In this document: in pieces, positions 4,568 to 57,388 of the stretch
How the letters are laid out: each line of letters opens with the position of its first letter
Numbering within the stretch: the first letter of the stretch is position 1
Sequence record: MW272540.1
Direction: 5' to 3' (one strand)
DNA: 64,000 bases
Translations under genes and position numbers: made by a program
The notes under the pieces: generated by a model
Databases searched by the model: none
The model's input: only the letters and a program-made list of their open reading frames with translations
What the model was told of the DNA's origin: nothing

Positions 4568-4591
4568 AAAAATCGCCCGAAGGCGATTTTT
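4568..4591 (-). terminator. Rho-independent terminator with C(UUCG)G tetraloop
   Basis: AAAAATCGCC-TTCG-GGCGATTTTTT after the vs.1-like gene. Confidence 0.85.
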
Positions 4592-5099
4592 ATTTAATGC
4601 AATCACAGTTCCGAAGGAATCTAACGTTTTTGGCAACAGTTTCTACATAGGTCTTGTTAGACCCGTAACCTGCATTAAAACTCTCAACAACTTTTCTCCA
4701 ATTCCCACCACGAACTTTTTTCCAATAATCTAGCTCCATTAAAGCATAGTTGGCTGAAGATTCCATAGAATTGATCAACTCATTTCTCAACTTGATTCTA
4801 GACCTATAAGACATTTTAGAACCAGTCAACTGCTCAATTCTCTTAGTTGTGGATCTCAGGTTGTTTTGAAAAACACCATAATCACCACTTTTCTTATTAA
4901 TTAGGTTGACTCCGGCACGGCTTTCTGTCAGGGCAATAGCCGCCAAGGTCAGACCGTAACCAGATTCATTACCAAGCTCGTAAGCCCGTTGAATCGTGTA
5001 GATCTGATTTTCTGTCAACTCTTTATTTTCATATACCACTGCATTAGCAGTGAGCGAAGTAAGGGATAAAAGGACCCCAAAAAGTAAACCACTTTTCAT
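4590..5099 (-). CDS. vs.1: SLT-domain lytic transglycosylase-like protein with signal peptide (T4 Vs.1-like)
   Basis: Hydrophobic N-terminus ending TANA; AAIALTESRAG, DYGVFQ and SFNAG lysozyme-like motifs. Confidence 0.75.
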   Translation of the reverse strand: MKSGLLFGVLLSLTSLTANAVVYENKELTENQIYTIQRAYELGNESGYGLTLAAIALTESRAGVNLINKKSGDYGVFQNNLRSTTKRIEQLTGSKMSYRSRIKLRNELINSMESSANYALMELDYWKKVRGGNWRKVVESFNAGYGSNKTYVETVAKNVRFLRNCDCIK

Positions 5100-5160: not shown

Positions 5161-5179
5161 AGGTCTATTATTTAGACCT
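5161..5179 (-). promoter_or_regulatory. late promoter CTAAATA within a 7-bp hairpin
   Basis: AGGTCTA-AATAA-TAGACCT on the minus strand; CTAAATA at 5175-5169. Confidence 0.55.
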
Positions 5180-5222: not shown

Positions 5223-5338
5223 TTTTAGTTTCACTTGCAATCAAACTATAAAGTTTCTATAAGTATTTATATAGAAGATCTATAATTAGAAAAACGATGA
5301 GCGAAGCGAATCCGCGTAGCGTGACTCACTTCGTTCGT
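5223..5338. repeat. dispersed non-coding element, copy 1 (AT-rich core 5223-5287 plus GC-rich module 5294-5338)
   Basis: The core matches 48769-48833 at 59 of 65 nt; 5323-5338 is the exact reverse complement of 48726-48741. Confidence 0.9.
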
Positions 5339-5372: not shown

Positions 5373-5708
5373 CTATATTAGGATAGTACAATCCATAAGG
5401 TATGTCATATGAACGATTAATGTAGCCCCTTCAAGGTGGTATCCTTTGACGTATATATCTGATACTTGGTCTTCATATTGTTCGCTAACAAGACTTTCAA
5501 TAATTGAAAACGTGCCAATTATACTTTCTTTTACTAGGTCGATCTCTTCATCAGACAAAAGGAAGTGTAATTCTTCACAATACATCTTTGCTTTTTGGCC
5601 TTGTGTCCCATTAGTTACGCTGTTTGTGCATGGGTTAATATAGAATTCCGTGGAACCGACCAAATGCACAACAGTTTCATTAAACTGATCAATAACCATG
5701 AGAACCAC
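5373..5708 (-). CDS. hypothetical protein
   Basis: 111-aa ORF, overlapping start with a GGAG-like SD. Confidence 0.65.
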   Translation of the reverse strand: MVLMVIDQFNETVVHLVGSTEFYINPCTNSVTNGTQGQKAKMYCEELHFLLSDEEIDLVKESIIGTFSIIESLVSEQYEDQVSDIYVKGYHLEGATLIVHMTYLMDCTILI

Positions 5709-41772: not shown

Positions 41773-42242
41773 TTTAATTCCTTCAAATTGTAAATATTTT
41801 GGTTTGACGAACCCTTCCAAATCAAATTAGGATCTTTTAGTTCTTCTTCAAATCGACCATCGACCAAGACATCTATGTATTTCATTATACCACACATGGA
41901 CACATCTTTTGAAATCTCATCGAGGGTATAACCAGTCCACAACCAAATTGTTTTATTTGGGTACTTGTCTTTAAACCAAACAACAAACCGCAACACACCA
42001 CCACGGTTTTTGTGGAATAACGGGTCCCCACCAAGCAAGGATATACCATCTCGGTTAATCAATGAGTCTTCCATATCTTTTTCAACAAGTTTATAGATAT
42101 CCATATCCGACCCGTTATCATAATTCCAAGTGTGCTTAGAAAAACAACCCTTACACATATGATCACACCCAGAAAACCAAATGGAGGAACGAGTCCCCCA
42201 TCCATTTACTACATCTAAACTTTTATAATCCGCAATTTTCAT
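41769..42242 (-). CDS. nrdG: anaerobic RNR activase (radical SAM)
   Basis: [25 protein letters not shown]. Confidence 0.95.
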
Positions 42243-44081
42243 AGATGTTTTACCCTTCTCACCGATTCGTTATGTTTTCCATCGTTGAATGGTCTTTTTT
42301 CCACATCACCCAAATATCCACAAACCCGGCGACGAACGTCTAATTTATCACCATCGTGGTTCCCACAAGAAGGACACACATAACCTTTTGATGTCGGGTT
42401 CATCTCACCTTTATACCCACAATCAAAACACTGGTCGATTGGTGTATTTGTTCCATAATATGGAGTATGTTTATATGCAAAATCCCATACATCTTCTAGA
42501 GCTTTGAGATTATTTCTCATATTAGGGAATTCCCCATAAGAAATAAAACCACCTTTGGAGAAGGTAATAAAGTCTCGCTCAAACAAGATCTTATGATATG
42601 GATCTGTTTTATGCTCAACATCAAGGTGGAAAGAGTTGGTGTAATATCCTTTGTCATGGACTGAATGAATGTGATGTTTCTTATCCAATTTGACAAATCT
42701 TTCACACAGAGACTCACTAGGAGTACCGTACAAAGAGAATGCAAATCCGGTTTCTTTAGTCCATTCGTCTGTAATGTACTTCATTTTTCGTAAAACAGCA
42801 AGACAAAACTCTTGTTTTTCCTTGTTGTTAAAGATATGTGACGGATCGTTAAAATTAATGATCTCACTTACCTCATGTAGTCCGATATAACCACAAGACA
42901 CACTAGCTCTACCATTCTCAAACAGATGAAACACATCATCATCAGCGTTTAAACGAGCCACAGCCCCGTTCATGTACAGGATGGGGGCAACTGATGCCTT
43001 AACGCCTTTGAATCGCTCTATGCGAGAAATAAGTGCCTTCTTGACGATTTCCATCCGGTCGGAAAGACACGCCATGAATTTTTCTTTATCACCACCAACA
43101 TCAAGGGCAATTCTCGGTAGGTTTAGGGTAACAACCCCGGCGTTAAATCGTCCATCGTGTACCTCTTCACCAGCTTCATTTTTCCATGGGTTAAGGAAAG
43201 AACGACAACCCATCGGCGCTTTAAAACTGCCAGTAACTTGGACAACTTGGTCATAACTAACTATATCAGGATACATACGCTCGGATGAACATTTTAAAGC
43301 CAGTTGCTTAATGTCATAGAACGGATCTGACGATTTGAGATTATGACCATCTTTGAGAATAAAAATCAGTTTCGGGAATACCGGCGTTTCATGGTCATCA
43401 CCAAGACCATCCATACGAACACGAAGAATCATCTCTTGGATCAGTTTCGCCTCTGGTGAAGTCCCCAGACCAAAAGACAATGTGGTAAATGGGGTTTGAC
43501 CTTGTGACGTACTCAATGAGTTAATTTGGTACTCGATGGTTTGCATAGAGTCATATACGATTTTACGTAGAGTATTTTCGACGTATTCTTTTTTATTCGG
43601 GATTTTATAATGGATTGCTTCAGCACATAGACGGTTATAATCCATCTTAACGTACTCTTCCAATACCAAATCGATATTGGCAATTGTATTACCACCATAA
43701 ATGTGATTAGCAACTTGAGTGATAATCTGGGTAATAATATTTGCAGCAGTTTTAACGTTTTTTTGGTTTGCTAATTTTCGCATTAGACAAAGTGAATCCA
43801 TGATCGAACATGTCTTTGACATTAATCAACATACAATTAAAAAACGGGAGAAGTGGACTATAACCAAGATCGTGGAAATGGATAATACCATCTCGGTGCG
43901 CGTCCAAAATATCAGGGGATAAAAAAGTGCTTGCATATGCTTTGCTTACAGCACTAGCCAACGCATCTCGTTTTGTGGGGAAGATCTTCAGATCCTTATT
44001 AGCATTCTCTTTTGTTAATTCTGGGTCGGAATCACCAACAATGCTCATTACTTCTTTATAAAGATTCATATTACTTACCAT
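42239..44081 (-). CDS. nrdD: anaerobic ribonucleotide reductase, frameshifted in an A7 run at 43758-43764
   Basis: The N-part (ENANKD, HFHDL, NCML) and C-part (YGG, QTPF, FPKL, MGCRS, RRVCGYL) join as ...KPKNVKTAA... if one A is removed. Confidence 0.9.
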
Positions 44082-47637: not shown

Positions 47638-48537
47638 TTGATGAACTATGGACATTGGACTACTGATGAAAAATTCGATCCAAGGGATATTCTTGGATTT
47701 GTTTATATGATATACTTCTCCAACGGGAAAAAGTATATTGGTGCTAAACGAGTATGGAAAAACCTTAAACGTCCACCTGCCACATACAAGAGGCAAGGTA
47801 AAACAGAATTTATAGAATCTGATTGGAGAAGTTACCGATCCAGTTCTAACGAAGTCGTTGAGCTGGAAGCAGCCGGTATCGAAATAACCGAAATGCGTAT
47901 CTTGGCAACGTATGATTCGTGGGGTAAGGTTCTTCTTTGTGAAGCAATGCTTCAATTCTCTTTGAATGCATTGTCCTCTGATACATACCTAAACAAACAG
48001 ATCGAAGGTTTGTTCACATCTGCATGTTTTGATAAAAAAGTATATAATGACGTTGCCCGATGCGTAGCAATCGAGCAATACGACCCGACCACACCACAAG
48101 TAATCGTTTATCGCGGTGGTGATCGAAGTATCATATGTGATAAACCAACCGCCAAAGAGTATATCAGATCAGGGTGGTCTGTTGCTTCACTTCCTTCAAC
48201 ATATCAACGTAAAAGCTATCCAATGATACCATACACAATCAAGTGTAAGGATACTGGGGAAGAGATTACAATATGTGATTTCAAAAAGCAATATGAAGTT
48301 GCAAAAAAACTTGAATGTCCTGCTGGGGACCTAAGTCGCCTTAGAGCTGGTGAAATCCTTAACATTGGGACTTTCACCATGAAAGATGTTAGGTCCCCCC
48401 AAATGTGGGAGAAGGACGGACAATTTTATTACAATGCTGCGGACCTTAAAAATGCTGGGGTAGATAAAAAAGATTGTATCCATCACCCGGCAGAAGACCG
48501 AGAAGCATATAGGATCAGGCTTGCATTAGCAGTATAG
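47638..48537 (+). CDS. GIY-YIG (Seg-like) homing endonuclease
   Basis: GFVYMI..KKYIG, DWRSYRSSS, EAMLQF, YLN. Confidence 0.85.
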   Translation: MMNYGHWTTDEKFDPRDILGFVYMIYFSNGKKYIGAKRVWKNLKRPPATYKRQGKTEFIESDWRSYRSSSNEVVELEAAGIEITEMRILATYDSWGKVLLCEAMLQFSLNALSSDTYLNKQIEGLFTSACFDKKVYNDVARCVAIEQYDPTTPQVIVYRGGDRSIICDKPTAKEYIRSGWSVASLPSTYQRKSYPMIPYTIKCKDTGEEITICDFKKQYEVAKKLECPAGDLSRLRAGEILNIGTFTMKDVRSPQMWEKDGQFYYNAADLKNAGVDKKDCIHHPAEDREAYRIRLALAV

Positions 48538-48648
48538 CCAAGCACCAACACAGAAGACCCACTCATACCATAAAGTAATGAGTTGTGGGTTAGTCCGATA
48601 ACATGCTGGAACAAGATTGATTCGGATAGTTTTTTGTTCGGTTTTCAT
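48526..48648 (-). CDS. small protein (40 aa) with a hydrophobic C-terminus
   Basis: MKTEQKTIRINLVPACYRTNPQLITLWYEWVFCVGAWLYC; AAGGA SD and its own promoter. Confidence 0.5.
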   Translation of the reverse strand: MKTEQKTIRINLVPACYRTNPQLITLWYEWVFCVGAWLYC

Positions 48649-48681
48649 TTTGTATTCCTTTTAATGGTAGTTTCTAAGAGA

Positions 48682-48710
48682 ATCCTAACATAAGATTTAG
48701 ATCAAGTAAA
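48682..48710 (-). promoter_or_regulatory. early promoter
   Basis: TTTACT-17-TAGGAT with TG extension. Confidence 0.6.
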
Positions 48711-48725
48711 GATTTTTTAGGAAAC

Positions 48726-48833
48726 ACGAACGAAGTGAGTCGCCGGAGGCGGTTCGCTACGCTCACAATTTTAGTTTCACTTGTAATCAAACTATAAAAT
48801 CTCTATAAGTAATTTAATAGAAGATCTATAATT
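48726..48833. repeat. dispersed non-coding element, copy 2 (GC module 48726-48765 plus AT core 48769-48833)
   Basis: Matches copy 1 at 5223-5338, with the GC module inverted and on the other side of the core. Confidence 0.9.
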
Positions 48834-48863
48834 TGATTTCATATGATACTATTATAAGGACAG

Positions 48864-48892
48864 AAAAGCCTACCCTTTTGGGTAGGCTTTTT
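48864..48892 (-). terminator. Rho-independent terminator after gene 35
   Basis: AAAAGCCTACCC-AAAA-GGGTAGGCTTTT on the minus strand. Confidence 0.85.
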
Positions 48893-48895
48893 CAT

Positions 48896-51800
48896 TTATA
48901 CTATCTTCCATAAGGTGTTTTGGAATTTCAAACCCACTTCACCGTTTGGTCTTATATCTATGACTTTATATTGACTTGATGGTTCAATCCATTTATCCAC
49001 ATCTGGGTCTTTAGCTATAACATAGTTACCAGATCCAATTGCAGCATATTTAGTTTGAACAATACCATCAATATTTAGTTGTATTTCCAATTCGGTGTAA
49101 GGAGTTATTTTCCCTTCAAATTCGATGATCATACTATAAGAAGAACCACCACTTACAATTTTGGAGATTTTATTATCGTAGATATAAACGTCATCTTTGA
49201 GTCTGCCGTTTCCAGCCACATCACCAATTGAAGAATCCCAACCAACTACGCCACCACCAGTTTTCAATAAAACGGATCGCAATTTCTTACGGAAAGTTAA
49301 GCTGTTCTGTATAATATTGTTGGATGGTATGACATAACCATTATCAGCTAGTTTATATACACGCGAACTTGAAACCATATTAGAACTTTCAATCATATCA
49401 ACTTGTCTAACAACAGATGCGTTATTTCTCAAACACATATTTGATGATATACCATCAACGTGATTATATGTAGAGTTATTAACAACACCATTTGTTTTAA
49501 TAGATAGGTTAGGAAAATTATATTGAATATCAACATCAAATTCTTTACCAGCAACAAAACCATGGTTTACAGTAATGTTACTAATTGTAGTTCCGCGATT
49601 TTTTACAACGAATTGTAATGTTGTTCCTAATAGGGTAACGAATATTCCATGGGTTTTATCTGTATTATCCAAATAATAACCAACAGTAAAGTTATCACCC
49701 AAAAATCTTAATCTCCACGATTCTTTTTGTGGCATCCATGCAGGTAAGATATTTAGATAGTTGTTATTCGCTAAATTTGGAACCCAAGAACTCATAGTAT
49801 TACCAATCATTTGAGGTTCTTCAAATTCTTGGAAGAAATAGTTAGATGTAGCAACGTCAGTCCCCATCGCATCGGTCTTTGTTGTATACACTACCAAACT
49901 ACGTATTGTTACGATATCACCGTTTCTGGCATTTGGCACACATACATACAGACCTGAATCATGAGTCGATTCTGTGTGGTTTTGATACAATACACCCTTA
50001 TATCTTCCAGTCGGAAGGGATTTCATAATACTACCAACACCAACGGTTGTACCATATACATCCTTTAAATATAGTGGTCGTGGACAATCTATATCATATT
50101 CTATACGGAATCTACCCCTTGGCGGTAAATTTAAATTGAATGTCATCCCACCTTCGGAAACGTCTTTGATAAATTTAAATCGGTTGTTACTTAAAACCTG
50201 AATAGGCTGGTTTAATTCATCTGACATTTTCCATTTTGATAGATCAACTGTATCATATACCAATACCTTAGAACCGTTTTGATCTTCTATCCCAGTTGAA
50301 TAGTAGTTCAATCTAGATTCTGGGTTGTTTATATATGTTCTAGCATCGTTATCACCAACCATGGTAATATCCCATATATTACCATTCCAACACTCGGTTT
50401 TATTATATCTTCCACCAATAGTTCTAATAACAGAACCAACTTTTAATTCCAAAACAAGACTGTGAGGAACATACGGAGCCAACACACCCCCAGTATACGG
50501 TTTTCCATCCAGCTGCACAATAGAAAAATATTGACCTGATATATTCAATGTTCTTGTTTTTGTGAGATATATCCAACCACCTTGCAACTCTTGGGTATTT
50601 GTACTTCTTCCGTCAAACAAATACATGTTGAAATCTGTTAAATTAAGAGTGAAGTTCAGAGTTATATATCCATTTTTGTTTAAGGAATATAGTGGGGGAA
50701 TTTCTAAACAAGTACCACCATTGAAATTATATGTATATTTTTTGTTCTTCACCCATTCAATAACTGGTTTTTCGCTATTTATATCTGGGTCCGTATAACA
50801 ATCAACGTCGAATTTGAGGTTTGTCATATTACCGGAGGTAATCCAGTTTTTACCATCTAGTCTAAAGAAGAAAAGGTGTCTCGGTTGTAGATTTACAGCA
50901 GATTGTCTCTCTGCTATTACTTCGTATCTTTTATTCAACTCGATACCAGTATTCAAGACTGCACCGTTGTTTTCTACTATTGTAACCCAAGCTTTAGATC
51001 CGGCTTTCATCCCAGCAGGTATTAGTTGACTTCCCACACCACAATATAACCAACCACCACCCGCATCAGGTACTATATCCGAACCAGAATAATAGATACC
51101 ACTAGATGGGCTAGATCCTTTGATGAAATTAAGTTTCTCTGATTGTGAATACTCATAATATCTAGAGTTATTAGGAATTAGATAATCTTCATATTCTGAT
51201 GTGATAATATAACCATTCATTTCAGAACCAACTCTAATTTCTTGGAAAGTTCTTTTATCTAGATCTTCAATTACTTCAGTACCTATAAGAACACCATTTA
51301 CATAGAATTTGATATTTGGGCTATCTACTTCCAATTTATACAGATATTCTTTGTTGCAAGAGACGATACCATTTGATCTAATTGTTTTTCCTGCATAAGT
51401 CACTGTATGCCCCATACCAAGAGGGTCTGATTGTGTTGTCATACCAATAAATATTGTGTCATCAGAGCCAGAACCAATCCTATTTGCTGATACGTTGGTG
51501 TCGGTATATACCATTGAAATGGAATATGCAAACTTTCTACCAACAACAAGAAATGGGTCTTTTATATATTTTCCGTCGTTATATAAAAATTGAGGAAAAC
51601 TAACAGGTTCCAAATTCCCATACTCAAAAGCGGTGACGTTCTTCTCTTTAATGCTACCTACTATATCACCACCAGTCTCTACAGCATCCTCTGTGATGAA
51701 ACCCCACTGACCTATTGTCGCTTTACCATCTTTTTGTACATTAGGTTTTTTTCTAAAAATAGAAACAGATCTAACCCCAGTAGTTCCCACGTATTGCGAT

Positions 51801-52675
51801 TTGATAGGCCACGATGTTGCATAGACCATGATACGATCTATTCCATTAGGGACAACAAAATCATTGTATACAGAATCCCATTGACCAGATGTATCTAAAG
51901 AGCTTACATATCCGGATGTAACGGATGTAGTCCCGTTATATCCAATGTAATAAAATCTAACAGATTCCCCTGCCGCAGCGGCAAGATCATCTCTATATGT
52001 ATCTAAACTGAATCTTAATGTCTCACCCTGATTAACTATCAGTTCGGAAAGCAAAACTTTATTCAGATACATGTTTATTTCTGGTGTTGTAGTTTTGGAA
52101 TTCATATATTCTTTTTGGTCAGATACAATAGAATTACCATATCCAACTACACCGATATCTGCAAATGTATCAAAAACGACTTCAAGAGATACTTTAATAG
52201 CAGAACTAACGCCATATTGTTCAACCATAATCTTTTTCAGACCACAGTCATATATAGCTGCATATCTGGTATTTTGTGTTCCGGTTGTTGGGTCCCAATG
52301 ATTATTCCACCCAATACTACCGATTTTCTTAAAGTAGTTGTTTATTGTGGTAGTTGTTGCATTTTCACCATGTGATATCATCAAAATAATTCCAGATGTA
52401 ACCGAAGACATCCAACCTTCGAATCTATTCACATCTGTACTGTTTTTAAAATTAAAAACGTCTCGCATACCAACGCTGAGATCGTTATTTATACTAACGC
52501 ATTCGAGGCCATCAACCTCAACAGGGTTAATAGAAAATCCGTTAATAGCTAATATCTTTTTTTCTGTATTCGTTTTTGGTGAAATTTTTATCTGATTAAG
52601 ACCAGAGAAATTTTCGGAAAGTTTATTAGACTTAATCCCACCATTCGAAATACTTGATATAACAAGTTCGGCCAT
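48896..52675 (-). CDS. 35: long tail fibre hinge/connector protein with large C-terminal extension
   Basis: Follows gene 34; RYAAIYD..LEVVFDTFADIGVVGY resembles T4 gp35 SYAAFY..LDVVFDSLEDVGATGF; 1259 aa. Confidence 0.75.
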   Translation of the reverse strand: MAELVISSISNGGIKSNKLSENFSGLNQIKISPKTNTEKKILAINGFSINPVEVDGLECVSINNDLSVGMRDVFNFKNSTDVNRFEGWMSSVTSGIILMISHGENATTTTINNYFKKIGSIGWNNHWDPTTGTQNTRYAAIYDCGLKKIMVEQYGVSSAIKVSLEVVFDTFADIGVVGYGNSIVSDQKEYMNSKTTTPEINMYLNKVLLSELIVNQGETLRFSLDTYRDDLAAAAGESVRFYYIGYNGTTSVTSGYVSSLDTSGQWDSVYNDFVVPNGIDRIMVYATSWPIKSQYVGTTGVRSVSIFRKKPNVQKDGKATIGQWGFITEDAVETGGDIVGSIKEKNVTAFEYGNLEPVSFPQFLYNDGKYIKDPFLVVGRKFAYSISMVYTDTNVSANRIGSGSDDTIFIGMTTQSDPLGMGHTVTYAGKTIRSNGIVSCNKEYLYKLEVDSPNIKFYVNGVLIGTEVIEDLDKRTFQEIRVGSEMNGYIITSEYEDYLIPNNSRYYEYSQSEKLNFIKGSSPSSGIYYSGSDIVPDAGGGWLYCGVGSQLIPAGMKAGSKAWVTIVENNGAVLNTGIELNKRYEVIAERQSAVNLQPRHLFFFRLDGKNWITSGNMTNLKFDVDCYTDPDINSEKPVIEWVKNKKYTYNFNGGTCLEIPPLYSLNKNGYITLNFTLNLTDFNMYLFDGRSTNTQELQGGWIYLTKTRTLNISGQYFSIVQLDGKPYTGGVLAPYVPHSLVLELKVGSVIRTIGGRYNKTECWNGNIWDITMVGDNDARTYINNPESRLNYYSTGIEDQNGSKVLVYDTVDLSKWKMSDELNQPIQVLSNNRFKFIKDVSEGGMTFNLNLPPRGRFRIEYDIDCPRPLYLKDVYGTTVGVGSIMKSLPTGRYKGVLYQNHTESTHDSGLYVCVPNARNGDIVTIRSLVVYTTKTDAMGTDVATSNYFFQEFEEPQMIGNTMSSWVPNLANNNYLNILPAWMPQKESWRLRFLGDNFTVGYYLDNTDKTHGIFVTLLGTTLQFVVKNRGTTISNITVNHGFVAGKEFDVDIQYNFPNLSIKTNGVVNNSTYNHVDGISSNMCLRNNASVVRQVDMIESSNMVSSSRVYKLADNGYVIPSNNIIQNSLTFRKKLRSVLLKTGGGVVGWDSSIGDVAGNGRLKDDVYIYDNKISKIVSGGSSYSMIIEFEGKITPYTELEIQLNIDGIVQTKYAAIGSGNYVIAKDPDVDKWIEPSSQYKVIDIRPNGEVGLKFQNTLWKIV

Positions 52676-52719: not shown

Positions 52720-55700
52720 TTAACTAATCCAAACAAAGTCAACAGACTTGGTTACTGGGTTCGCTCTTATTTCTAAGAATTCCCCGTTACCAACTGCTAT
52801 CCTAAGTTTATTTACGGTTGTTGTTCCGTTGAAGTTTGCATCACCGTTTGTGGTTATTGCCTTACCAGAGTTGATGATCAATTCGCCAGTCATGGTATCA
52901 CCGCCTTTGAATACGCGAGACCCAGAAGTTGTATTTACATCATCAATCACAGCATCCAAGTAATCTTTTCTGATAGCATCATCCGGATCCATAGGTAAAG
53001 AACTACCTATTTTAACTTGTCCGTATACTTTCAAATTACCATTCGATTCGAATGACGATGTGTTAGCGGGAGACGCTACCCCGTTCGGACGAATAGTCAA
53101 TCCACCAAGTGAACCAATAGTCAAACTTTCGTTTAGAGCAATTGTGATACCACTCTTCGATGTGTTACCCATCCAAAGGTTTTGAATACCATTTCGTTTA
53201 AAATAAGTATCGTGAATGAAGGTTTTATTACCAGAAATAGTTTCTGCAATACTTCCTTCGGACCTAACATATCTCAACTCGGAATAACCGAATCTAACCA
53301 GCTCGTTATTTCCTGACGGGTCCTGACCACCGTTAGAAACTCTACCAGAAAATGATGTTGCAGTATCGTAGAACTGAGCAGCAATAACGCTAGAACCTAT
53401 TCTCTTCAAGGTAAATGGACTATTCAGACCACCACCAACCCCAGCATCCCAACCAGAACTATCAGTTGAGTTTGTGAAAGATATAATGGTGTTATGTGTA
53501 GAACTACCAGAATCATTAAGAATCAGTTTACATGTCCCTTTTGAAATAGTAACATCTTGCGAGAAGGTCATCGCACCTGTGATTGTTTGTGCTACGGTAC
53601 GACGAACCCAATCAGTAGATGGTATTCTATTTCCAGCGACTTCCATTGCGCTTGCGCTAACAGCAACGGCTTTCAGTGGCAGATAGTTAGCCAATGCAGT
53701 GTTAAGACCACGAGGTGAAACTAGAACATCTCCATGAGCATAACTAGATAAGGTTCTGGTGGAACCTAAAATATCGTTACCTTCAAACACAGAGTTAGCA
53801 GCACTACTATTTGTTAGAATAGCTGTGATACCTACACCATAACGGGTATCGGTCATTCTGTAACCAGTACCAGACCGGATCCCGGTGGTCATGGTAAGAG
53901 GTGTAACCGCCTTGGTGTTATTTGTACCTGTATCGACATCAGATTGAGTCGCAATATACAGAATACCAGTCTGTGTGGTTGAAGCTTGTCTCGCACTTAA
54001 TTTCTTAGGTGTGATTGCAACGTTATCAAGGGATGCCCCCGACATATCATTAGCTTCGATCTGGGTAGCCACTCGCAGGGAACCGCGCTGTATTTCCGTT
54101 GGAACCTGTATGTTGATAAGTTGACCATCCCAAATGTTTCCTTGAGAAGTCAAACCAGAATCGCTTGATACGGTGATACGGTCACGCGACAACCAGTTTC
54201 CGAATGTTTTAGGAGTAACAAACCATTTGTCATGAAGAATACCCGCATCAACTTCAAGTTGAGTAGCCGTTTCGGCTAGACCCCATCTGGTTTCAGTCGC
54301 CTGTCTATTCACCAGTCCTTTGATACTTACATGTACGTTATCTTCAGTTGGTGGTGTGTTGCTCAATACTTCAGTTGAGTTTGCAGCTCTTGACAACCCG
54401 GTAAGAGTTGCTGTAGCCTGTCTTCCTTCAAGTGTTGAAGCAGTCACAACCAATGCACCATTTGTGGTGTTGGCAGCCCCGGTATTTGCTTCCCCTTGTG
54501 TAGCCAAGAAAACCATCCCTTGGGAGTTTTCTGTTGCTACTTTTTCAAACAAGGTTTTCGGGGTGATAACCTTAATATGATCGTTAAAATCGTGAACCCC
54601 AGTACCAGCGGTTGTTCTGGTAGTCTGTTTGGTTCCACCAAAAGCAACGAGAGCAGACAAGCCGGTCATAGTTTCAGTTGCTACCCTACCATTTAATGTT
54701 TGTGGTGTGATAGCAATCTGAGCCCAGTTTTCACCAGTACCGGATTGTGCATTTGCTTGTGCTTGAGTCGCGACTTTAAGCAGACCTCTCATTGAAGTGG
54801 TCGCCAGACGGTCATTTAGTAAAAACGGGGTGATTATCACACCGGACCAAGCTTCGTCATTGAGGTTTCCGGTAGTTGCTTTTGATTCTGAGTTAGTGGA
54901 TAATCTCGCAATCCCACGACGAGTACCAGTAGCGGTTTTGTTTGCAAGTGTTTCTGATGTAACAAAATCCTCACAATCTGGATTCTGACCGGTTACAATG
55001 TCTTCTTTGTTCTTGTTTACGCTATCCTGTGACGCGATTGCAGCCATACCGTAAAAATCTCGGACGTTACGGTCCACCCGGTAAGGGATCTCGCTCATTG
55101 TGACAACTGCCCAAACATCCTTACCAGAACCTAGGGCATTTTTGAAGAATACGAATTCCCATTGCTCGCCACGGTTTTGAATATTAAATGATTGCGTTTT
55201 TGTCAGATGTGTATTAAGATCGGATAAAAGAGCACGATACGCACTAATTCTAGGATTGGTTAACGTATCTCCATCTGGCATGAAATAATCATTCGTGCTA
55301 GTTCCATCTACGTTCAATACTAAGGTGGATCCTTGTACCATATAACGTGTATCTACAAAGAAACTATCACCTTGTGCTGCATCCCTTGGGAATGTAACTG
55401 TAACGGTTGACGGGGTTTCTGTGTAGATCACAAGTTGGTCATTAGGTTCACCCTTGTATGTTGCAGTTTTTACGCTTTTCCATCTCGATTTACTGTCAGA
55501 GTCGAAAACTCTCCAAGCGTTTTGGTTTGCGTCAAATACAAACATACCCCAATCAGTAGAATCAAACATTGCGGTTTTAACTGGTGTACTTCCTACTGAT
55601 ACTATGATATTATGGGTACTATTGGAATGAACAGACACATACGTTTTTGTGACCGGGTTATTACCATCAAGGTCATATGTGCTAATTGTATCCCCATGTT

Positions 55701-56409
55701 TTGCGTATCTTGGTAGGGTAATGTTTATCCCACCAATGTACTGGGTTTCCCTTACAAGTTGGTCCCCGACAAAAGCCTTATAGTATCCACCAGATGGATA
55801 GCTACGGTTACTTATTATTTTTTTACGAACGTCCCCACGATATTCTATTTGAGGAATCCAATCGTTACCGTTCAAAATAAAATACACTGTTGAGTATGGA
55901 GCTGTTATCTTATAGATAGGCTCACCACCAATAGTTCTACCGTTTCCGGATACGTCAATTGTGTTGTCGTGTAGGTTTGTTCCGTTATCTCTGATAACGA
56001 TCATATCACCCTGCAAAGCAGACGTAGGCATGGTAAAACCGATATCTTGCCCAGATGATTGAACCACTACATGCTCACCAGCCAAAAGGTTGGTTTGAGC
56101 TGGTGCATTCGATGTAACCATTCTCCAACTTGGGTCAGTTCGAACTGGTTTCCATTTTGACTGAGTAAATGCTTCTGGGGTTGTGATATCAACCAAACAG
56201 ATATATATTCTGTTGTTGTATATTGCTGCAAAATCTTTTTCATACTTGCGGTTTGGATCGTACAGTTGGATGGTGTTTTTATCTATGAACGCCTGTACGT
56301 TCATACCGTCCAATGGATCTGTAAAGTCTGGATAACCAACGTTTACAAGTTGTTTACCAGCTGCATCTAAACCGTCTGTAACTCGCAATGGTATTCTATT
56401 ATCAGCCAT
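52720..56409 (-). CDS. 34: long tail fibre proximal subunit
   Basis: GLDAAG..VNVG, repeated G..xAT..E..xG....VTP units; start MADNR after GAGG; late promoter CTAAATA at 56453-56447. Confidence 0.93.
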   Translation of the reverse strand: MADNRIPLRVTDGLDAAGKQLVNVGYPDFTDPLDGMNVQAFIDKNTIQLYDPNRKYEKDFAAIYNNRIYICLVDITTPEAFTQSKWKPVRTDPSWRMVTSNAPAQTNLLAGEHVVVQSSGQDIGFTMPTSALQGDMIVIRDNGTNLHDNTIDVSGNGRTIGGEPIYKITAPYSTVYFILNGNDWIPQIEYRGDVRKKIISNRSYPSGGYYKAFVGDQLVRETQYIGGINITLPRYAKHGDTISTYDLDGNNPVTKTYVSVHSNSTHNIIVSVGSTPVKTAMFDSTDWGMFVFDANQNAWRVFDSDSKSRWKSVKTATYKGEPNDQLVIYTETPSTVTVTFPRDAAQGDSFFVDTRYMVQGSTLVLNVDGTSTNDYFMPDGDTLTNPRISAYRALLSDLNTHLTKTQSFNIQNRGEQWEFVFFKNALGSGKDVWAVVTMSEIPYRVDRNVRDFYGMAAIASQDSVNKNKEDIVTGQNPDCEDFVTSETLANKTATGTRRGIARLSTNSESKATTGNLNDEAWSGVIITPFLLNDRLATTSMRGLLKVATQAQANAQSGTGENWAQIAITPQTLNGRVATETMTGLSALVAFGGTKQTTRTTAGTGVHDFNDHIKVITPKTLFEKVATENSQGMVFLATQGEANTGAANTTNGALVVTASTLEGRQATATLTGLSRAANSTEVLSNTPPTEDNVHVSIKGLVNRQATETRWGLAETATQLEVDAGILHDKWFVTPKTFGNWLSRDRITVSSDSGLTSQGNIWDGQLINIQVPTEIQRGSLRVATQIEANDMSGASLDNVAITPKKLSARQASTTQTGILYIATQSDVDTGTNNTKAVTPLTMTTGIRSGTGYRMTDTRYGVGITAILTNSSAANSVFEGNDILGSTRTLSSYAHGDVLVSPRGLNTALANYLPLKAVAVSASAMEVAGNRIPSTDWVRRTVAQTITGAMTFSQDVTISKGTCKLILNDSGSSTHNTIISFTNSTDSSGWDAGVGGGLNSPFTLKRIGSSVIAAQFYDTATSFSGRVSNGGQDPSGNNELVRFGYSELRYVRSEGSIAETISGNKTFIHDTYFKRNGIQNLWMGNTSKSGITIALNESLTIGSLGGLTIRPNGVASPANTSSFESNGNLKVYGQVKIGSSLPMDPDDAIRKDYLDAVIDDVNTTSGSRVFKGGDTMTGELIINSGKAITTNGDANFNGTTTVNKLRIAVGNGEFLEIRANPVTKSVDFVWIS

Positions 56410-56464
56410 TGTAGTATCCTCGTTTATTAAAATAGTTCTCACAATGTATTTAGGGAGAAAACAA

Positions 56465-57388
56465 ATGTCATTGTCTCATTTAATGGAAGGGTTGCCAGAT
56501 ACCCATTTCATTGACTATAGCCAAATAGTAATATCCAATATTATGTATCATTTTGATGATGAAGATGCGATTTCACCAAAGATCGTTCGAAATATAATCA
56601 TCGATACAATCCGTTCTCATGTAATTAAAAACAAACAAGAATATCCAAATGTTGTTATCGGAGTTGATTCGAGTGAAGGATATTGGAGAAGTAAACTAGC
56701 TTATTATTACAAGAAAAACCGGATTGCCAAAAAAGAAGGGTCCGCTCGTGATTGGAACTCGATTTATTCTGCTATGAACGCAATCCGTCAGGAACTGATT
56801 GACCACCTTCCATATAAAACCATTTATGTACCGGGAGCGGAAGCAGATGATACCTTCGGTGTTCTGATAAAATACTTCAAAGAGCAAGACCCCGGTGTTA
56901 AAATACTAATAACCTCTGCTGATGGAGATTTCACGCAACTACAGAGGTTTTCTGGTGTGAAACAGTGGAATCCCATGCATAAGAAATGGGTTAAACCTGA
57001 ACATGGTAGCCCAGAACGGGATCTACTTTATAAAATCGTGAAAGGTGATGCGAAGGATGGTATTGCTAATATCTATTCTCCATCCGATATTCTTTATAAG
57101 AATAGTCTTCTTGAAAAAGAAGAACGAACCAAACAGAAATCAATTAGAAAAGAGTTGATTGCGTCTGTATTCGCAGCTAAAGACCCAAAAAGTTTATTCA
57201 CTGGTGAAGTTTTAGACCGATATAATGAAAATGAAAAACTTATCGATTTAAAATTAATTCCTGACGATTTAAGTGATAAGATCATACAAGAATATGAGAA
57301 TTTTAAACCTGCTCCACGTGGTCGTCTAACCAACTATTTTATCAAATCTGGTATGGTTGAAATGATCGGAAAAGAATCTGAATTTTAA
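56465..57388 (+). CDS. rnh: RNase H (5'-3' exonuclease, FEN family)
   Basis: IDYSQI, GYWRS..YYKKNR, GAEADD, SADGDFTQL, KGDAKDGIA. Confidence 0.95.
   Translation: MSLSHLMEGLPDTHFIDYSQIVISNIMYHFDDEDAISPKIVRNIIIDTIRSHVIKNKQEYPNVVIGVDSSEGYWRSKLAYYYKKNRIAKKEGSARDWNSIYSAMNAIRQELIDHLPYKTIYVPGAEADDTFGVLIKYFKEQDPGVKILITSADGDFTQLQRFSGVKQWNPMHKKWVKPEHGSPERDLLYKIVKGDAKDGIANIYSPSDILYKNSLLEKEERTKQKSIRKELIASVFAAKDPKSLFTGEVLDRYNENEKLIDLKLIPDDLSDKIIQEYENFKPAPRGRLTNYFIKSGMVEMIGKESEF

Follow-up and report, generated by a model that had tools for sequence, protein, structure and literature searches.

The genome of Aeromonas phage ZPAH1, a T4-like Ishigurovirus, contains six copies of an intergenic cassette of ~110 bases, in which an AT-rich, promoter-like core is joined to a GC-rich cluster of mini-hairpins (the GC module). 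The cassette is an old, position-conserved, two-part intergenic unit of the Ishigurovirus and Ceceduovirus T4-like phages of Aeromonas. We document directly its anatomy, copy number, positional conservation, hairpin covariation and in-place inversions.

Distribution and anatomy of the cassette

In the ZPAH1 record (MW272540.1), the cassettes are located at about 16, 67, 111, 134, 177-178 and 209-210 kb. The window, the whole 64,000-nucleotide stretch analyzed here, holds the two that a first-pass annotation had described as copies 1 and 2 (record position = window position + 62000). That annotation overlooked that they are two members of a six-copy family, and that three of the six ZPAH1 copies have the GC module inverted with respect to the core. 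When the core is read forward, the module lies 3' of it in 5/6 copies. All six loci are occupied in phage CC2, and so are the five of them covered in phage 65; in total, 21 Aeromonas phage records match the cassette. The Aeh1 group has an analogous multicopy element.

We found no published description of the cassette family. Rfam at the gathering threshold gave no matches in the window or in 15 loci holding the 16-mer at 48726-48741, and sub-threshold matches were caused by the neighboring gp35 terminator. In exact scans of IMG/VR and metagenome contigs, 20-mer core patterns returned chance matches only and a 17-mer recovered CC2 and AS-zj. The 16-mer had 33 matches in the same scans (about the number expected by chance), roughly a third of them with complementary flanks.

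The features of copy 1 and its surroundings are as follows.

4590-5099, minus strand: SLT transglycosylase gene
5168..5175, minus strand: CTAAATAA, matching the ZPAH1 late-promoter motif, upstream of the SLT transglycosylase gene
5223..5290, plus strand: AT-rich core, copy 1
5296..5338, plus strand: GC module of copy 1 (H2, central hairpin, reverse complement of H1)
5296-5312, plus strand: H2 mini-hairpin
5313-5321, plus strand: central hairpin CGC-GTA-GCG
5323-5338, plus strand: reverse complement of H1

The core (~66 bp) consists of TTGCAA, a 17-nt spacer and TATAAG/T, an arrangement that is sigma-70-like, with a -10-like TATAAT at the 3' end. In copy 1 these elements are TTGCAA (5235-5240), TATAAG (5258-5263) after a 17-nt spacer, and TATAAT (5281-5286). 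Some 27 bp of ~80% A+T follow TATAAG. Four TATA motifs occur ~11 bp apart, along with an internal imperfect palindrome (5241-5261 / 5270-5290 in copy 1). TTGCAA-17-TATAAG is found in 5/6 ZPAH1 copies and is almost absent elsewhere in the genome. In phage 65 the spacer is 16 nt long and the equivalent sequence is GTGCAA-16-TATAAT. Across the core alignment, TATAA(G/T) is invariant and the -35-like hexamer keeps its TG and AA. No covariation within the core was seen by eye. Intact cores end in TATAAT, the sole two exceptions being TACAGT, which is compatible with TAnnnT. Identity of the core between the genera is 92-95%, compared with ~72% for nrd genes.

A sigma-70 consensus scan identified no promoter in the core, because TATAAG lacks the final T of a -10 element; the TATAAT at the 3' end has no -35 partner. 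A MotA-type middle promoter is not supported, as TGCTT is absent from every core. The opposite strand of the core was also rejected as a T4 late promoter (TATAAATA): ZPAH1 late genes are instead preceded by CCCTAAATAA, and TATAAATA is absent from the phage 65 cores. Upstream of the SLT transglycosylase gene, CTAAATAA is conserved in CC2, Aszh-1 and phage 65, and is the likelier candidate for the promoter of that gene. The first-pass annotation had suggested that the core might be an iteron block. Tandem Repeats Finder detected no tandem array in it at a score of at least 30, and what is present, copy 1 included, is just two imperfect direct units of ~19 nt, 23 nt apart and 74-80% identical, rather than an array.

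The GC module is a GC-rich quasi-palindrome of ~42 bp made up of three adjacent mini-hairpins. H2 contains exact GCGAAGC or GCGTAGC, whereas H1 and the central hairpin have G-N-A triloops closed by C-G pairs. The mini-hairpins are set within G-TGA-(hairpin)-GAA-C and C-GAA-(hairpin)-TGA-G, so that tandem G·A pairs flank them, and each strand of the module has a single hairpin in which tandem G·A pairs accompany a G-N-A loop. In the three-hairpin model, seven pairs are changed on both sides and the covariation score is 0.351, compared with 0.180 in shuffles; none of 500 shuffles reached the observed score. One long hairpin is the minimum-energy fold on both strands. It is less well supported by covariation than the three mini-hairpins, and in the Ceceduovirus 209-kb copy it is a weak fold (z -0.65); it is a possible alternative conformation of the module. 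The earlier proposal of a strand-specific hairpin that would act on opposite strands at the two loci is weakened by this architecture: the two strands bear similar G·A/GNA mini-hairpins, so that inversion only exchanges one for the other.

The module was rejected as an intrinsic terminator, given that most copies lack a U tract. The only module flagged as a terminator was copy 1 on the minus strand, with a sub-stem of just 5 bp, and neither copy 2 nor the remaining copies have a T run after the module. The same hairpin cap also occurs in three unrelated viral contigs, ~45 nt downstream of consensus TTGACA-N17-TATAAT promoters.

Rearrangement at the copy-2 locus and elsewhere

The following features were identified at the copy-2 locus.

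47641..48537, plus strand: SegE-like GIY-YIG homing endonuclease gene (PF19835, E 6e-29)
48682..48710, minus strand: promoter-like pair, TTTACT (48710 to 48705), 17-nt spacer, TAGGAT (48687 to 48682)
48726..48766, plus strand: GC module of copy 2 (H1, central hairpin, reverse complement of H2)
48726-48741, plus strand: H1 mini-hairpin
48741-48751, plus strand: central hairpin CGCC-GGA-GGCG
48752-48766, plus strand: reverse complement of H2
48769..48836, plus strand: full-length AT-rich core, copy 2
48823..48851, minus strand: partial inverted core, left-half motif TAGTATCATATGAAATCAAA, then TTATAGATCT
48863..48892, both strands: two-way intrinsic terminator hairpin at the end of the gp35-like tail-fibre gene
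48896-52675, minus strand: gp35-like tail-fibre gene

The sequence relationships reported previously between the two copies were reproduced. The 16-mer at 48726-48741 (ACGAACGAAGTGAGTC) and positions 5323-5338 are exact reverse complements, and with up to two mismatches these are its only two sites in the window, compared with 0.03 expected from shuffles. Positions 48753-48765 agree with the reverse complement of 5298-5310 at 12/13 positions. The core has the same orientation in both copies (5223-5290 and 48769-48836 form a 68-nt direct repeat of 90% identity), with the GC module to its right in copy 1 and to its left in copy 2. In copy 2 the core elements are TTGTAA (48781-48786), a 17-nt spacer, TATAAG (48804-48809) and TATAAT (48827-48832).

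From these relationships it had been concluded that the copy-2 GC module was inverted and moved across the core, and comparison with related phages reverses this view. At this locus phage 65 and CC2 have the terminator first, followed by a forward core, the GC module and the small gene. Along the minus strand, on which the small gene lies, the ZPAH1 module is oriented as in phage 65 and CC2 and has kept its orientation relative to the flanking genes. It is the core that is flipped, being reversed relative to the same locus in both phages. The first-pass annotation also overlooked the partial inverted core, whose motif runs from 48851 to 48832 on the minus strand and which overlaps the 3' end of the full core. 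Together the full and partial cores form a quasi-palindrome with 35-nt arms (48772-48806 / 48817-48851) that are 74% complementary. The partial core is a remnant of the core in its ancestral orientation. The resident core of copy 2 appears to have been replaced by an inverted one that left part of the old core behind.

At two other loci it is the GC module that has been inverted in place: at the 134-kb locus, where the same locus was compared between phages, and at the 209-kb locus, where phage 65 differs from the others. The claim that core and module are separable is therefore upheld, with the core flipped at the copy-2 locus and the module at the 134-kb and 209-kb loci.

The arrangement at copy 2 is neither a simple duplication nor an assembly artefact, as had been argued. 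Short-read contigs do break within the repeat, as they might if repeats had been misjoined, but such a misjoin is extremely improbable. In the independent isolate Aswh_1, the copy-2 locus is present in one collinear piece (97.5%) and copy 1 is matched at 100%. Contigs from unrelated public runs cross the junction of the left flank and the GC module (in X1, X3 and X4), and those in X1 and X4 run from 48738 across the core into gp35, spanning the GC/core/gp35 junction. Furthermore, the partial inverted core and its flanks are unique sequence. A search of public runs for ZPAH1 RNA-seq returned none, only DNA runs and trace metatranscriptome contigs.

Cassettes within one genome are more alike than those that occupy one locus in different genomes, indicating concerted evolution. 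The ZPAH1 core type is nearer to that of CC2, which belongs to the other genus, than to that of phage 65, which belongs to the same genus. Parts of the cassette are deleted in some relatives; for example, the GC module is missing at some loci of Aszh-1, the records of which are unverified assemblies. Between gp54 and gp26, phage 65 carries two cores that point toward each other. We considered whether cassettes are mosaic boundaries by comparing Aszh-1 with AsSzw2, but identity was patchy throughout, with no clear link to the cassettes.

The leftward promoter proposed at TTTACT, situated between the copy-2 GC module and a 40-codon gene (48526-48648), is a hexamer match only, although the TTTACT/TAGGAT pair is conserved at the locus (TTTACA/T-N17-TAnnAT is kept in phage 65 and CC2). 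The pattern has no coding-strand bias in the genome: within the minus-strand gene block, TTTAC[AT]-N16-18-TAnnnT occurs 7 times on the coding strand and 14 times on the other strand. Such sequences do not qualify as a general early promoter class in ZPAH1. TTGAC[AT]-N16-18-TAnnnT is biased to the coding strand (28 vs 6), many matches being inside genes. The SegE-like gene, ~190 bp from copy 2, is context outside the cassette.

Possible roles of the cassette

The reading that we favor, tentatively and with something short of even confidence, is that the cassette is a promoter-like core that would fire into a structured leader, kin to the PeSL promoter/stem-loop cassettes. The core would be a promoter aimed at the GC module. 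Given that TATAAT is 4-13 nt upstream of the module, a transcript would start at or just before the hairpin cluster, which would form a very stable structured 5' leader of the RNA and would be a barrier or stabilizer for transcripts from either side. In this role the cassette would mark transcription-unit boundaries. The GC module would work in either orientation, and may tolerate flips because each strand begins with a similar G·A/GNA hairpin. Six dispersed copies with internal palindromes could provide a substrate for ectopic recombination or template switching, which may account for the homogenized copies, local deletions and in-place inversions. Copy 2 of ZPAH1 would be one such product, in which an inverted core took over most of the resident core.

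Several observations are consistent with the promoter reading, among them the conservation of the core and of its hexamer positions, the covarying hairpins and the parallel in three viral contigs. The intrinsic terminator of the upstream gene adjoins the cassette at three loci, and in the ancestral arrangement the core is aimed at the next gene at 4/6 loci. The start codon comes just 22-38 nt after the GC module at the 16-kb and 134-kb loci, so that a separate promoter would have little room. A start codon directly follows the cassette at these two loci (with a Shine-Dalgarno sequence at 16 kb and no clear one at 134 kb), and not at the other four. Other observations count against a promoter. 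At the 67-kb and 177-kb loci the core aims into the 3' end of the previous gene, away from the next gene, and this direction is conserved across genera. In avDM6 a gene starts ~15 nt past the back of the core, and the convergent cores of phage 65 also count against it, as does the negative sigma-70 consensus scan. The 66 near-invariant bases, including AATCAAA in the spacer, far exceed what a promoter needs, and the even spacing of the cassettes and their nearness to strand-switch points are not predicted by a purely transcriptional role.

These placement data bear on the main rival, which we regard as unlikely: that the six cassettes are near-identical R-loop replication origins of the T4 type. 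The core would supply a promoter and an AT-rich unwinding stretch, and the annealed transcript would prime the leading strand. The mini-hairpins, one to a strand, would hold the displaced strand in a structured, SSB-free state, aiding helicase or primase loading; the palindrome would be usable in either orientation, and origin-linked recombination would homogenize the copies and occasionally flip their parts. At ~100 bp, with a putative promoter and an A+T-rich downstream element, the cassette resembles minimal T4 oriF/oriG (PMC3016281). The six copies are more evenly spaced than random points (P 0.002-0.009), and all four points at which transcription switches strand have a copy within 1-7.6 kb (P about 0.004), as active T4 origins also lie near such switches (PMC3016281). 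These spacing statistics are, however, post hoc and derive from a single gene order that is common to the related genomes. At two loci, how the cassette is oriented relative to genes does not matter, as would suit an origin. The module hairpins resemble the GCGNAGC-type mini-hairpins that occur at priming sites of G4, St-1 and alpha3 and at ssiA of RSF1010, and that bind SSB poorly (PMC13037366). Homogenized copies fit the coincidence of T4 origins with recombination hot spots (PMC3016281). Nevertheless, no sequence motif is common to the T4 origins, so the group has no precedent for six identical ones, and the GC module is absent at some Aszh-1 loci, albeit in unverified assemblies. If this is true, T4-like phages would here have their first family of repeated origins defined by sequence. 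Doubtful too is the literal model of the first-pass annotation, an initiator-bound iteron core with a strand-specific hairpin in the style of an IncQ oriV, and this we consider highly improbable. The two ~19-nt direct units, hairpins on opposite strands like ssiA and ssiB, and the separable modules would fit it. Against it are the lack of a tandem array, the presence of one G·A/GNA hairpin on each strand, such that inversion leaves the hairpin strand unchanged, the flipping of the core rather than the hairpin module at copy 2, and the fact that no initiator gene is known.

Quite unlikely, in our view, is a repeated palindromic element without a function of its own, REP- or MITE-like, kept by gene conversion and harmlessness, with flips and deletions as neutral rearrangements. 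Concerted evolution within the genome, the affinity of the ZPAH1 core to that of CC2, the deletions in relatives and the tolerance of both parts to inversion are as such a repeat would predict. Yet the same six loci are occupied in two genera, with no sign of recent movement, and the boundaries have neither terminal inverted repeats nor target-site duplications. Moreover, a functionless repeat does not explain why the core is 92-95% conserved when neighboring genes are at ~72%, why compensatory changes preserve the hairpins, or why placement in the genome is non-random. Conservation well beyond promoter needs would suit a site at which a DNA- or RNA-binding factor docks, whether encoded by the phage or a nucleoid protein of the host, but we judge this improbable. 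In one variant, the phased TATA motifs and the TTTCAnnTGnAATCAAA block would be a protein-binding array; alternatively, the AU-rich block and stable hairpins could be an RNA processing site in polycistronic transcripts. The ~11-bp interval would place the four TATA motifs on one helix face, and the AATCAAAnTATAA stretch of the core approximates the IHF consensus save for one key T, which we count for this explanation. The cassette would also work in either orientation relative to genes, and genes that begin directly past either of its ends suggest read-through transcripts. On the other hand, 66 conserved bases are more than RNase E-type sites require, and no candidate protein was identified.

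Significance and comparison with known systems

T4-like phages are a main model for how transcription is controlled, origins fire and recombination shuffles genomes, and we know of no repeated, sequence-defined landmark with fixed genome positions in them. The cassette family would be such a compact landmark, either as a new promoter-plus-structured-leader type or as a repeated origin set. Natural variants of the same locus, in which either part is flipped, deleted or doubled, are ready-made module-swap mutants. The motif of tandem G·A pairs and a G-N-A hairpin recurs in unrelated phage contigs, and thus the lessons may apply more widely.

A precedent for the promoter and structured-leader reading is the PeSL (promoter-early stem-loop) cassette of T4-like phages (Arbiol et al. 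2010, PMC2839356; Comeau et al. 2014, PMC4122927). Both are composite intergenic elements with an AT-rich promoter-like stretch and a stem-loop, repeated at gene boundaries, and both are implicated in recombination and local rearrangement. In PeSLs, however, the stem-loop is upstream of the promoter, and the 3' end carries a Shine-Dalgarno sequence and start codon, whereas in the cassette the hairpins are downstream of the core at most loci; the PeSL order is found in ZPAH1 only if the 67-kb and 177-kb copies are read backward. PeSLs are numerous, loosely conserved and concentrated in hyperplastic regions, beside insertions and deletions, whereas the ZPAH1 cassette has six fixed loci and a near-invariant 66-bp core. 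Its stem-loop, unlike that of PeSLs, comprises three hairpins with GNA loops and tandem G·A pairs, arranged as a quasi-palindrome. No part of a PeSL is known to flip, but both parts of the ZPAH1-family cassette do.

The cassette shares with T4 oriF(uvsY) and oriG(34) a length of ~100 bp, a promoter (putative in the cassette) followed by an A+T-rich stretch, and a location near strand switches (PMC3016281). The T4 origins have MotA-dependent middle promoters and no shared sequence (PMC3016281), whereas the cassette occurs as six near-identical copies, lacks a TGCTT box at -30 and has an added hairpin module. The IncQ oriV of RSF1010 (as cited in PMC13037366) is similar in pairing an AT-rich, repeat-bearing block with a palindrome that has a priming-type mini-hairpin per strand, and in having separable modules. 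The cassette differs in that its core lacks a true iteron array, no initiator or dedicated primase is known for it, and it is present as six copies in a phage genome rather than as a plasmid origin. GCGNAGC mini-hairpins are extraordinarily stable (PMC13037366), and the exact form occurs within H2; those of the cassette, unlike GCGNAGC hairpins, form part of a larger conserved motif in which tandem G·A pairs flank them. REP, BIME and MITE elements are likewise short, GC-rich, imperfect palindromes that are intergenic and repeated in both orientations. The cassette is distinguished from these by its six copies only, at loci fixed across genera, by the absence of terminal inverted repeats and target duplications, and by the constant coupling of its palindrome to a conserved AT-rich block.

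Sequence context and integrity of the two copies

The window is identical to the Aeromonas phage ZPAH1 genome (MW272540.1, 230,916 bp; Straboviridae, Emmerichvirinae, Ishigurovirus), with record positions equal to window positions plus 62000. Both copies of the cassette, an intergenic unit of an AT-rich core and a GC-rich module, each lie between two minus-strand genes.

Features around copies 1 and 2 (window positions unless stated)
4590-5099 (-), SLT transglycosylase gene, on one side of copy 1
5223-5290, core of copy 1; 5296-5338, its GC module
5373-5699 (-), hypothetical gene, on the other side of copy 1
42239-44081 (-), nrdD (anaerobic ribonucleotide reductase large subunit), split in the annotation into two overlapping CDS (record 104239-105801 and 105752-106081)
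47641-48537 (+), SegE-like GIY-YIG homing endonuclease gene (PF19835, E 6e-29), annotated 'hypothetical protein'
48526-48648 (-), 40-codon gene, beside copy 2
48726-48766, GC module of copy 2; 48769-48836, its core
48896-52675 (-), gp35-like tail-fibre gene, its 3' end beside copy 2

The homing endonuclease gene (65p046 in phage 65) is located between nrdA and the 40-codon gene, on the strand opposite to its neighbours and about 190 bp from copy 2. The nrdD gene of phage 65 is a single gene of 1842 bp; in ZPAH1 the gene could truly be split, or the annotation could result from a frameshift or an error in sequencing. Near 55-56 kb (in window ~54000-57000) the sign of the GC skew switches where minus-strand genes (gp34) give way to plus-strand genes (RNase H onward), so that the skew here follows the direction of transcription.

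The first-pass annotation described 48726-48741 as the exact reverse complement of 5323-5338, with a neighbouring 13-mer agreeing at 12 of 13 positions, and both matches are as reported. No other site in the window resembles the 16-mer with two or fewer mismatches (shuffle expectation 0.03), and the 68-nt cores of the two copies form a direct repeat of 90% identity. Misassembly is excluded as the source of this arrangement. Aswh_1, an independent isolate, carries copy 2 in one piece (97.5%, collinear) and an identical copy 1, and contigs from unrelated public sequencing runs span both the left flank/GC module junction and the junction through GC module, core and gp35. Short-read contigs break within the repeat, and their loose ends correspond to flanks of other genomic copies (16, 134 and 177 kb in runs X1 and X3, 67 kb in X6). 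Over window positions 47900-49600, the related strains in runs X1 and X4 show 2/852 differences to the left of the cassette and 38/863 to the right, in the gp35 tail-fibre gene. Thus, divergence rises sharply at the cassette, although tail-fibre genes may be hypervariable regardless.

A six-copy family with independently inverted parts

In the complete ZPAH1 record, put together from pieces, we identified six units of core plus GC module. The GC module is inverted relative to the core in three of them, and copy 2 alone has it left of the core.

Arrangement of the six ZPAH1 cassettes, cores read forward (loci in kb of the record)
16, 67 and 178 kb: GC module right of core, orientation A (GTGAGCG...CGTTCGT)
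134 and 210 kb: GC module right of core, orientation B (ACGAACGAAGTGAGTC...GCTCAC)
111 kb (copy 2): GC module left of core, orientation B

The family occurs in 21 Aeromonas T4-like phage records, at 3-7 places per record. Comparisons covered CC2 and AS-zj (as IMG/VR loci), Aszh-1 and AsSzw2 (whole, unannotated genomes), phage 65 (positions 1-140 kb and the 227-kb locus), and one locus each of AP1 and avDM6. CC2 has all six loci occupied as in ZPAH1. Five of the six are occupied in phage 65, the 16-kb equivalent being outside the compared sequence.

Syntenic loci were oriented by the downstream gene and aligned pairwise. At the 111-kb locus, ZPAH1 and CC2 match plus/plus in the flanks and in the 5' arm of their GC modules, whereas the core aligns on the minus strand (63 nt, 87%, E 3e-14). 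The order in phage 65 and CC2 is gp35 terminator, forward core, GC module A, TTTACA-N17-TAnnAT and the small gene; in ZPAH1 it is terminator, reversed core, GC module A, TTTACT-N17-TAGGAT and the gene. Thus, the relative arrangement first described for copy 2 is correct, but it was the core that reversed, while the GC module, at first described as inverted and moved, kept its place. Part of the old core persists as a seventh left-half motif (TAGTATCATATGAAATCAAA; minus strand, 48851 to 48832), which meets the full core at a common TTATAGATCT, forming 35-nt inverted-repeat arms (48772-48806 / 48817-48851, 74% complementary by repeat finder). The ancestral orientation of this remnant indicates that most of the resident core was replaced by an inverted one. 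An imperfect inverted repeat of 21 nt, already present in the canonical core (5241-5261 / 5270-5290 in copy 1), offers microhomology for such an event.

At the 134-kb locus the opposite took place: the cores match plus/plus, and it is the GC module that aligns on the minus strand (B in ZPAH1; A in CC2, AsSzw2 and phage 65). The 210-kb locus is B in ZPAH1 and the Ceceduovirus phages and A in phage 65. These in-place inversions bear out the earlier suggestion of two parts that flip independently. At the gp54/gp26 locus of phage 65 (record 102151-102355), there are two complete cores in facing orientation, separated by about 70 bp, and between them two small mirrored hairpins (GGGC-TTT-GCCC and CGCC-AAA-GGCG) take the place of the usual GC module.

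Structure and relatives of the two parts

Alignment of 12 distinct GC modules resolves three parts: H2, G-TGA-[GC-GNA-GC]-GAA-C; a central GC hairpin with varying stems (CGCC/GGCG, CGC/GCG, CGGC/GCCG, CCC/GGG, AACGGC/GCCGTT); and the reverse complement of H1, H1 itself being C-GAA-[C-GAA-G]-TGA-G. Each strand therefore opens with one hairpin of tandem G·A pairs and a G-N-A triloop. Some central loops are G-N-A or GNRA on either strand (e.g., GGA, GTA, GAA, GCAA), others TTT, GCTA or GTTA. The H2 sequence includes GCGAAGC or GCGTAGC, a mini-hairpin motif of well-known, extreme stability that small phages have at their priming sites and RSF1010 has in ssiA (PMC13037366).

Fit of two folding models to the GC-module alignment
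Three mini-hairpins: 88.9% of cells paired; 7 two-sided pair changes; covariation 0.351 (shuffled 0.180); reached by 0/500 shuffles
One long hairpin: 89.1% of cells paired; 3 two-sided pair changes (2 in the central stem); covariation 0.209 (shuffled 0.153); reached by 7/500 shuffles

Covariation backs the mini-hairpins, with counts that are only indicative because the 12 sequences are related, whereas the energy model (-15 to -23 kcal/mol as RNA) favours the long hairpin for either strand. Thus, both folds may exist. Since the two strands of this quasi-palindrome carry similar hairpins, its inversion changes little, which fits the tolerated flips and weakens the proposal of a hairpin acting on opposite strands at the two loci.

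The consensus of 27 cores is tTAGTtTCA..TG.AATCAAA.TATAaA.TctCTATAAGTATtTatATAgAa.aTcTAtAaTTAga. Variation in the left half is confined to defined positions, and the right half is almost invariant within a genome type. The ZPAH1 core is of the Ceceduovirus type, not that of phage 65 and avDM6 of its own genus. Copies within a genome are more alike than same-locus copies of other genomes, which points to concerted evolution. The core includes a promoter-like pair, TTGCAA-17-TATAAG (16-nt spacer and TATAAT in phage 65). The TATAAT at the 3' end of the core has only two variants, both TACAGT, and lies 4-13 nt ahead of the GC module.

Aeh1-group phages have their own multicopy element, at 5-11 places in most and at 2 in the PX29/AsFcp group. 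The example that precedes the SLT gene (Aeh1, PX29, Ah1 and phiAS5 group; L057-L060, positions ~1180-1300) is an AT-rich block centred on TATAGATCT and containing a long inverted repeat with compensatory changes between phages (AAGACAAAATA/TATTTTGTCTT vs AGAAGAGAAGATA/TATCTTCTCTTCT); the block is flanked on both sides by GNA hairpins on opposite strands. The ZPAH1 16-mer (ACGAACGAAGTGAGTC) has 33 IMG/VR hits, roughly the chance estimate for a collection of unstated size. In unrelated contigs (e.g., L010, L013, L020, L023, L027, L029, L012, L022 and L026, among L008-L040) the exact 16-mer caps hairpins with variable complementary flanks. At least three flanking pairs surround it in 9 distinct contig families (about one expected), and in L012, L022 and L026 it lies about 45 nt downstream of a consensus sigma-70 promoter (TTGACA-N17-TATAAT). 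No Rfam family matches these loci.

Placement and candidate functions

The upstream gene's intrinsic terminator adjoins the cassette at the 111-, 134- and 178-kb loci, and at four loci the core was ancestrally directed towards the next gene. At 16 and 134 kb, 22-38 nt separate the GC module from the start codon. At 67 and 178 kb the core points backwards in every genome examined, and the downstream genes (SLT; baseplate hub gp26 homologue) have late-type motifs of their own in most genomes. In avDM6 a gene starts about 15 nt past the back of the core. The ZPAH1 late motif is CCCTAAATAA (core CTAAATA), not T4's TATAAATA, which has no strand bias in the ZPAH1 genome. CCCTAAATAA precedes gp23, gp22, gp20, gp19, gp24, gp48 and gp34 (window ~56410-56520 for gp34). 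MotA-box-like sequences (TGCTTnA-N10-14-TAnnnT) number 11 on the non-coding vs 1 on the coding strand of minus-strand gene blocks (record 1-118400 and 206000-230500), the reverse of the bias expected of middle promoters. The gene after the 134-kb cassette (record ~134471-134512, and homologues) lacks a clear Shine-Dalgarno sequence and has a weak DprA/Smf-like match (E 0.002, below the Pfam cutoff); a -10-like hexamer (TAGAAT or TATAAT) lies 6-7 nt upstream of its ATG, and the transcript may therefore lack a leader.

The spacing of the six copies is more even than that of randomly placed points (smallest gap, P 0.009; largest gap, P 0.004; spread, P 0.002). All four major transcription strand-switch points have a copy nearby, at distances of 1.1-7.6 kb (P about 0.004). 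Both tests are post hoc and concern one gene order, common to the relatives.

Tentatively, we read the core as a promoter-like unit that may fire into a structured leader and mark transcription-unit boundaries. A consensus scanner found no sigma-70 promoter in the core, and the conservation of AATCAAA and the 66-nt conserved length exceed what a promoter needs. The main rival is a T4-type R-loop replication origin (PMC3016281), which seems less likely to us; the cassette's size and layout also fit this reading, as do independence of gene orientation, mini-hairpins on opposite strands, concerted evolution and the placement statistics. A functionless repeated palindrome we hold to be decidedly unlikely, and a protein or RNA-processing site very doubtful. 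The iteron core of the first-pass annotation, taken literally, is highly improbable: two imperfect units of ~19 nt do occur 23 nt apart, but Tandem Repeats Finder detects no array, and they are equally describable as four TATA motifs ~11 bp apart.

The cassette has no Rfam match, and we found no published description in the open-access literature, reviews included. If the core is promoter-like, the closest relatives may be the PeSL (promoter-early stem-loop) cassettes of T4-like phages (PMC4122927, PMC2839356), from which this cassette differs in order, copy number, conservation and hairpin type.
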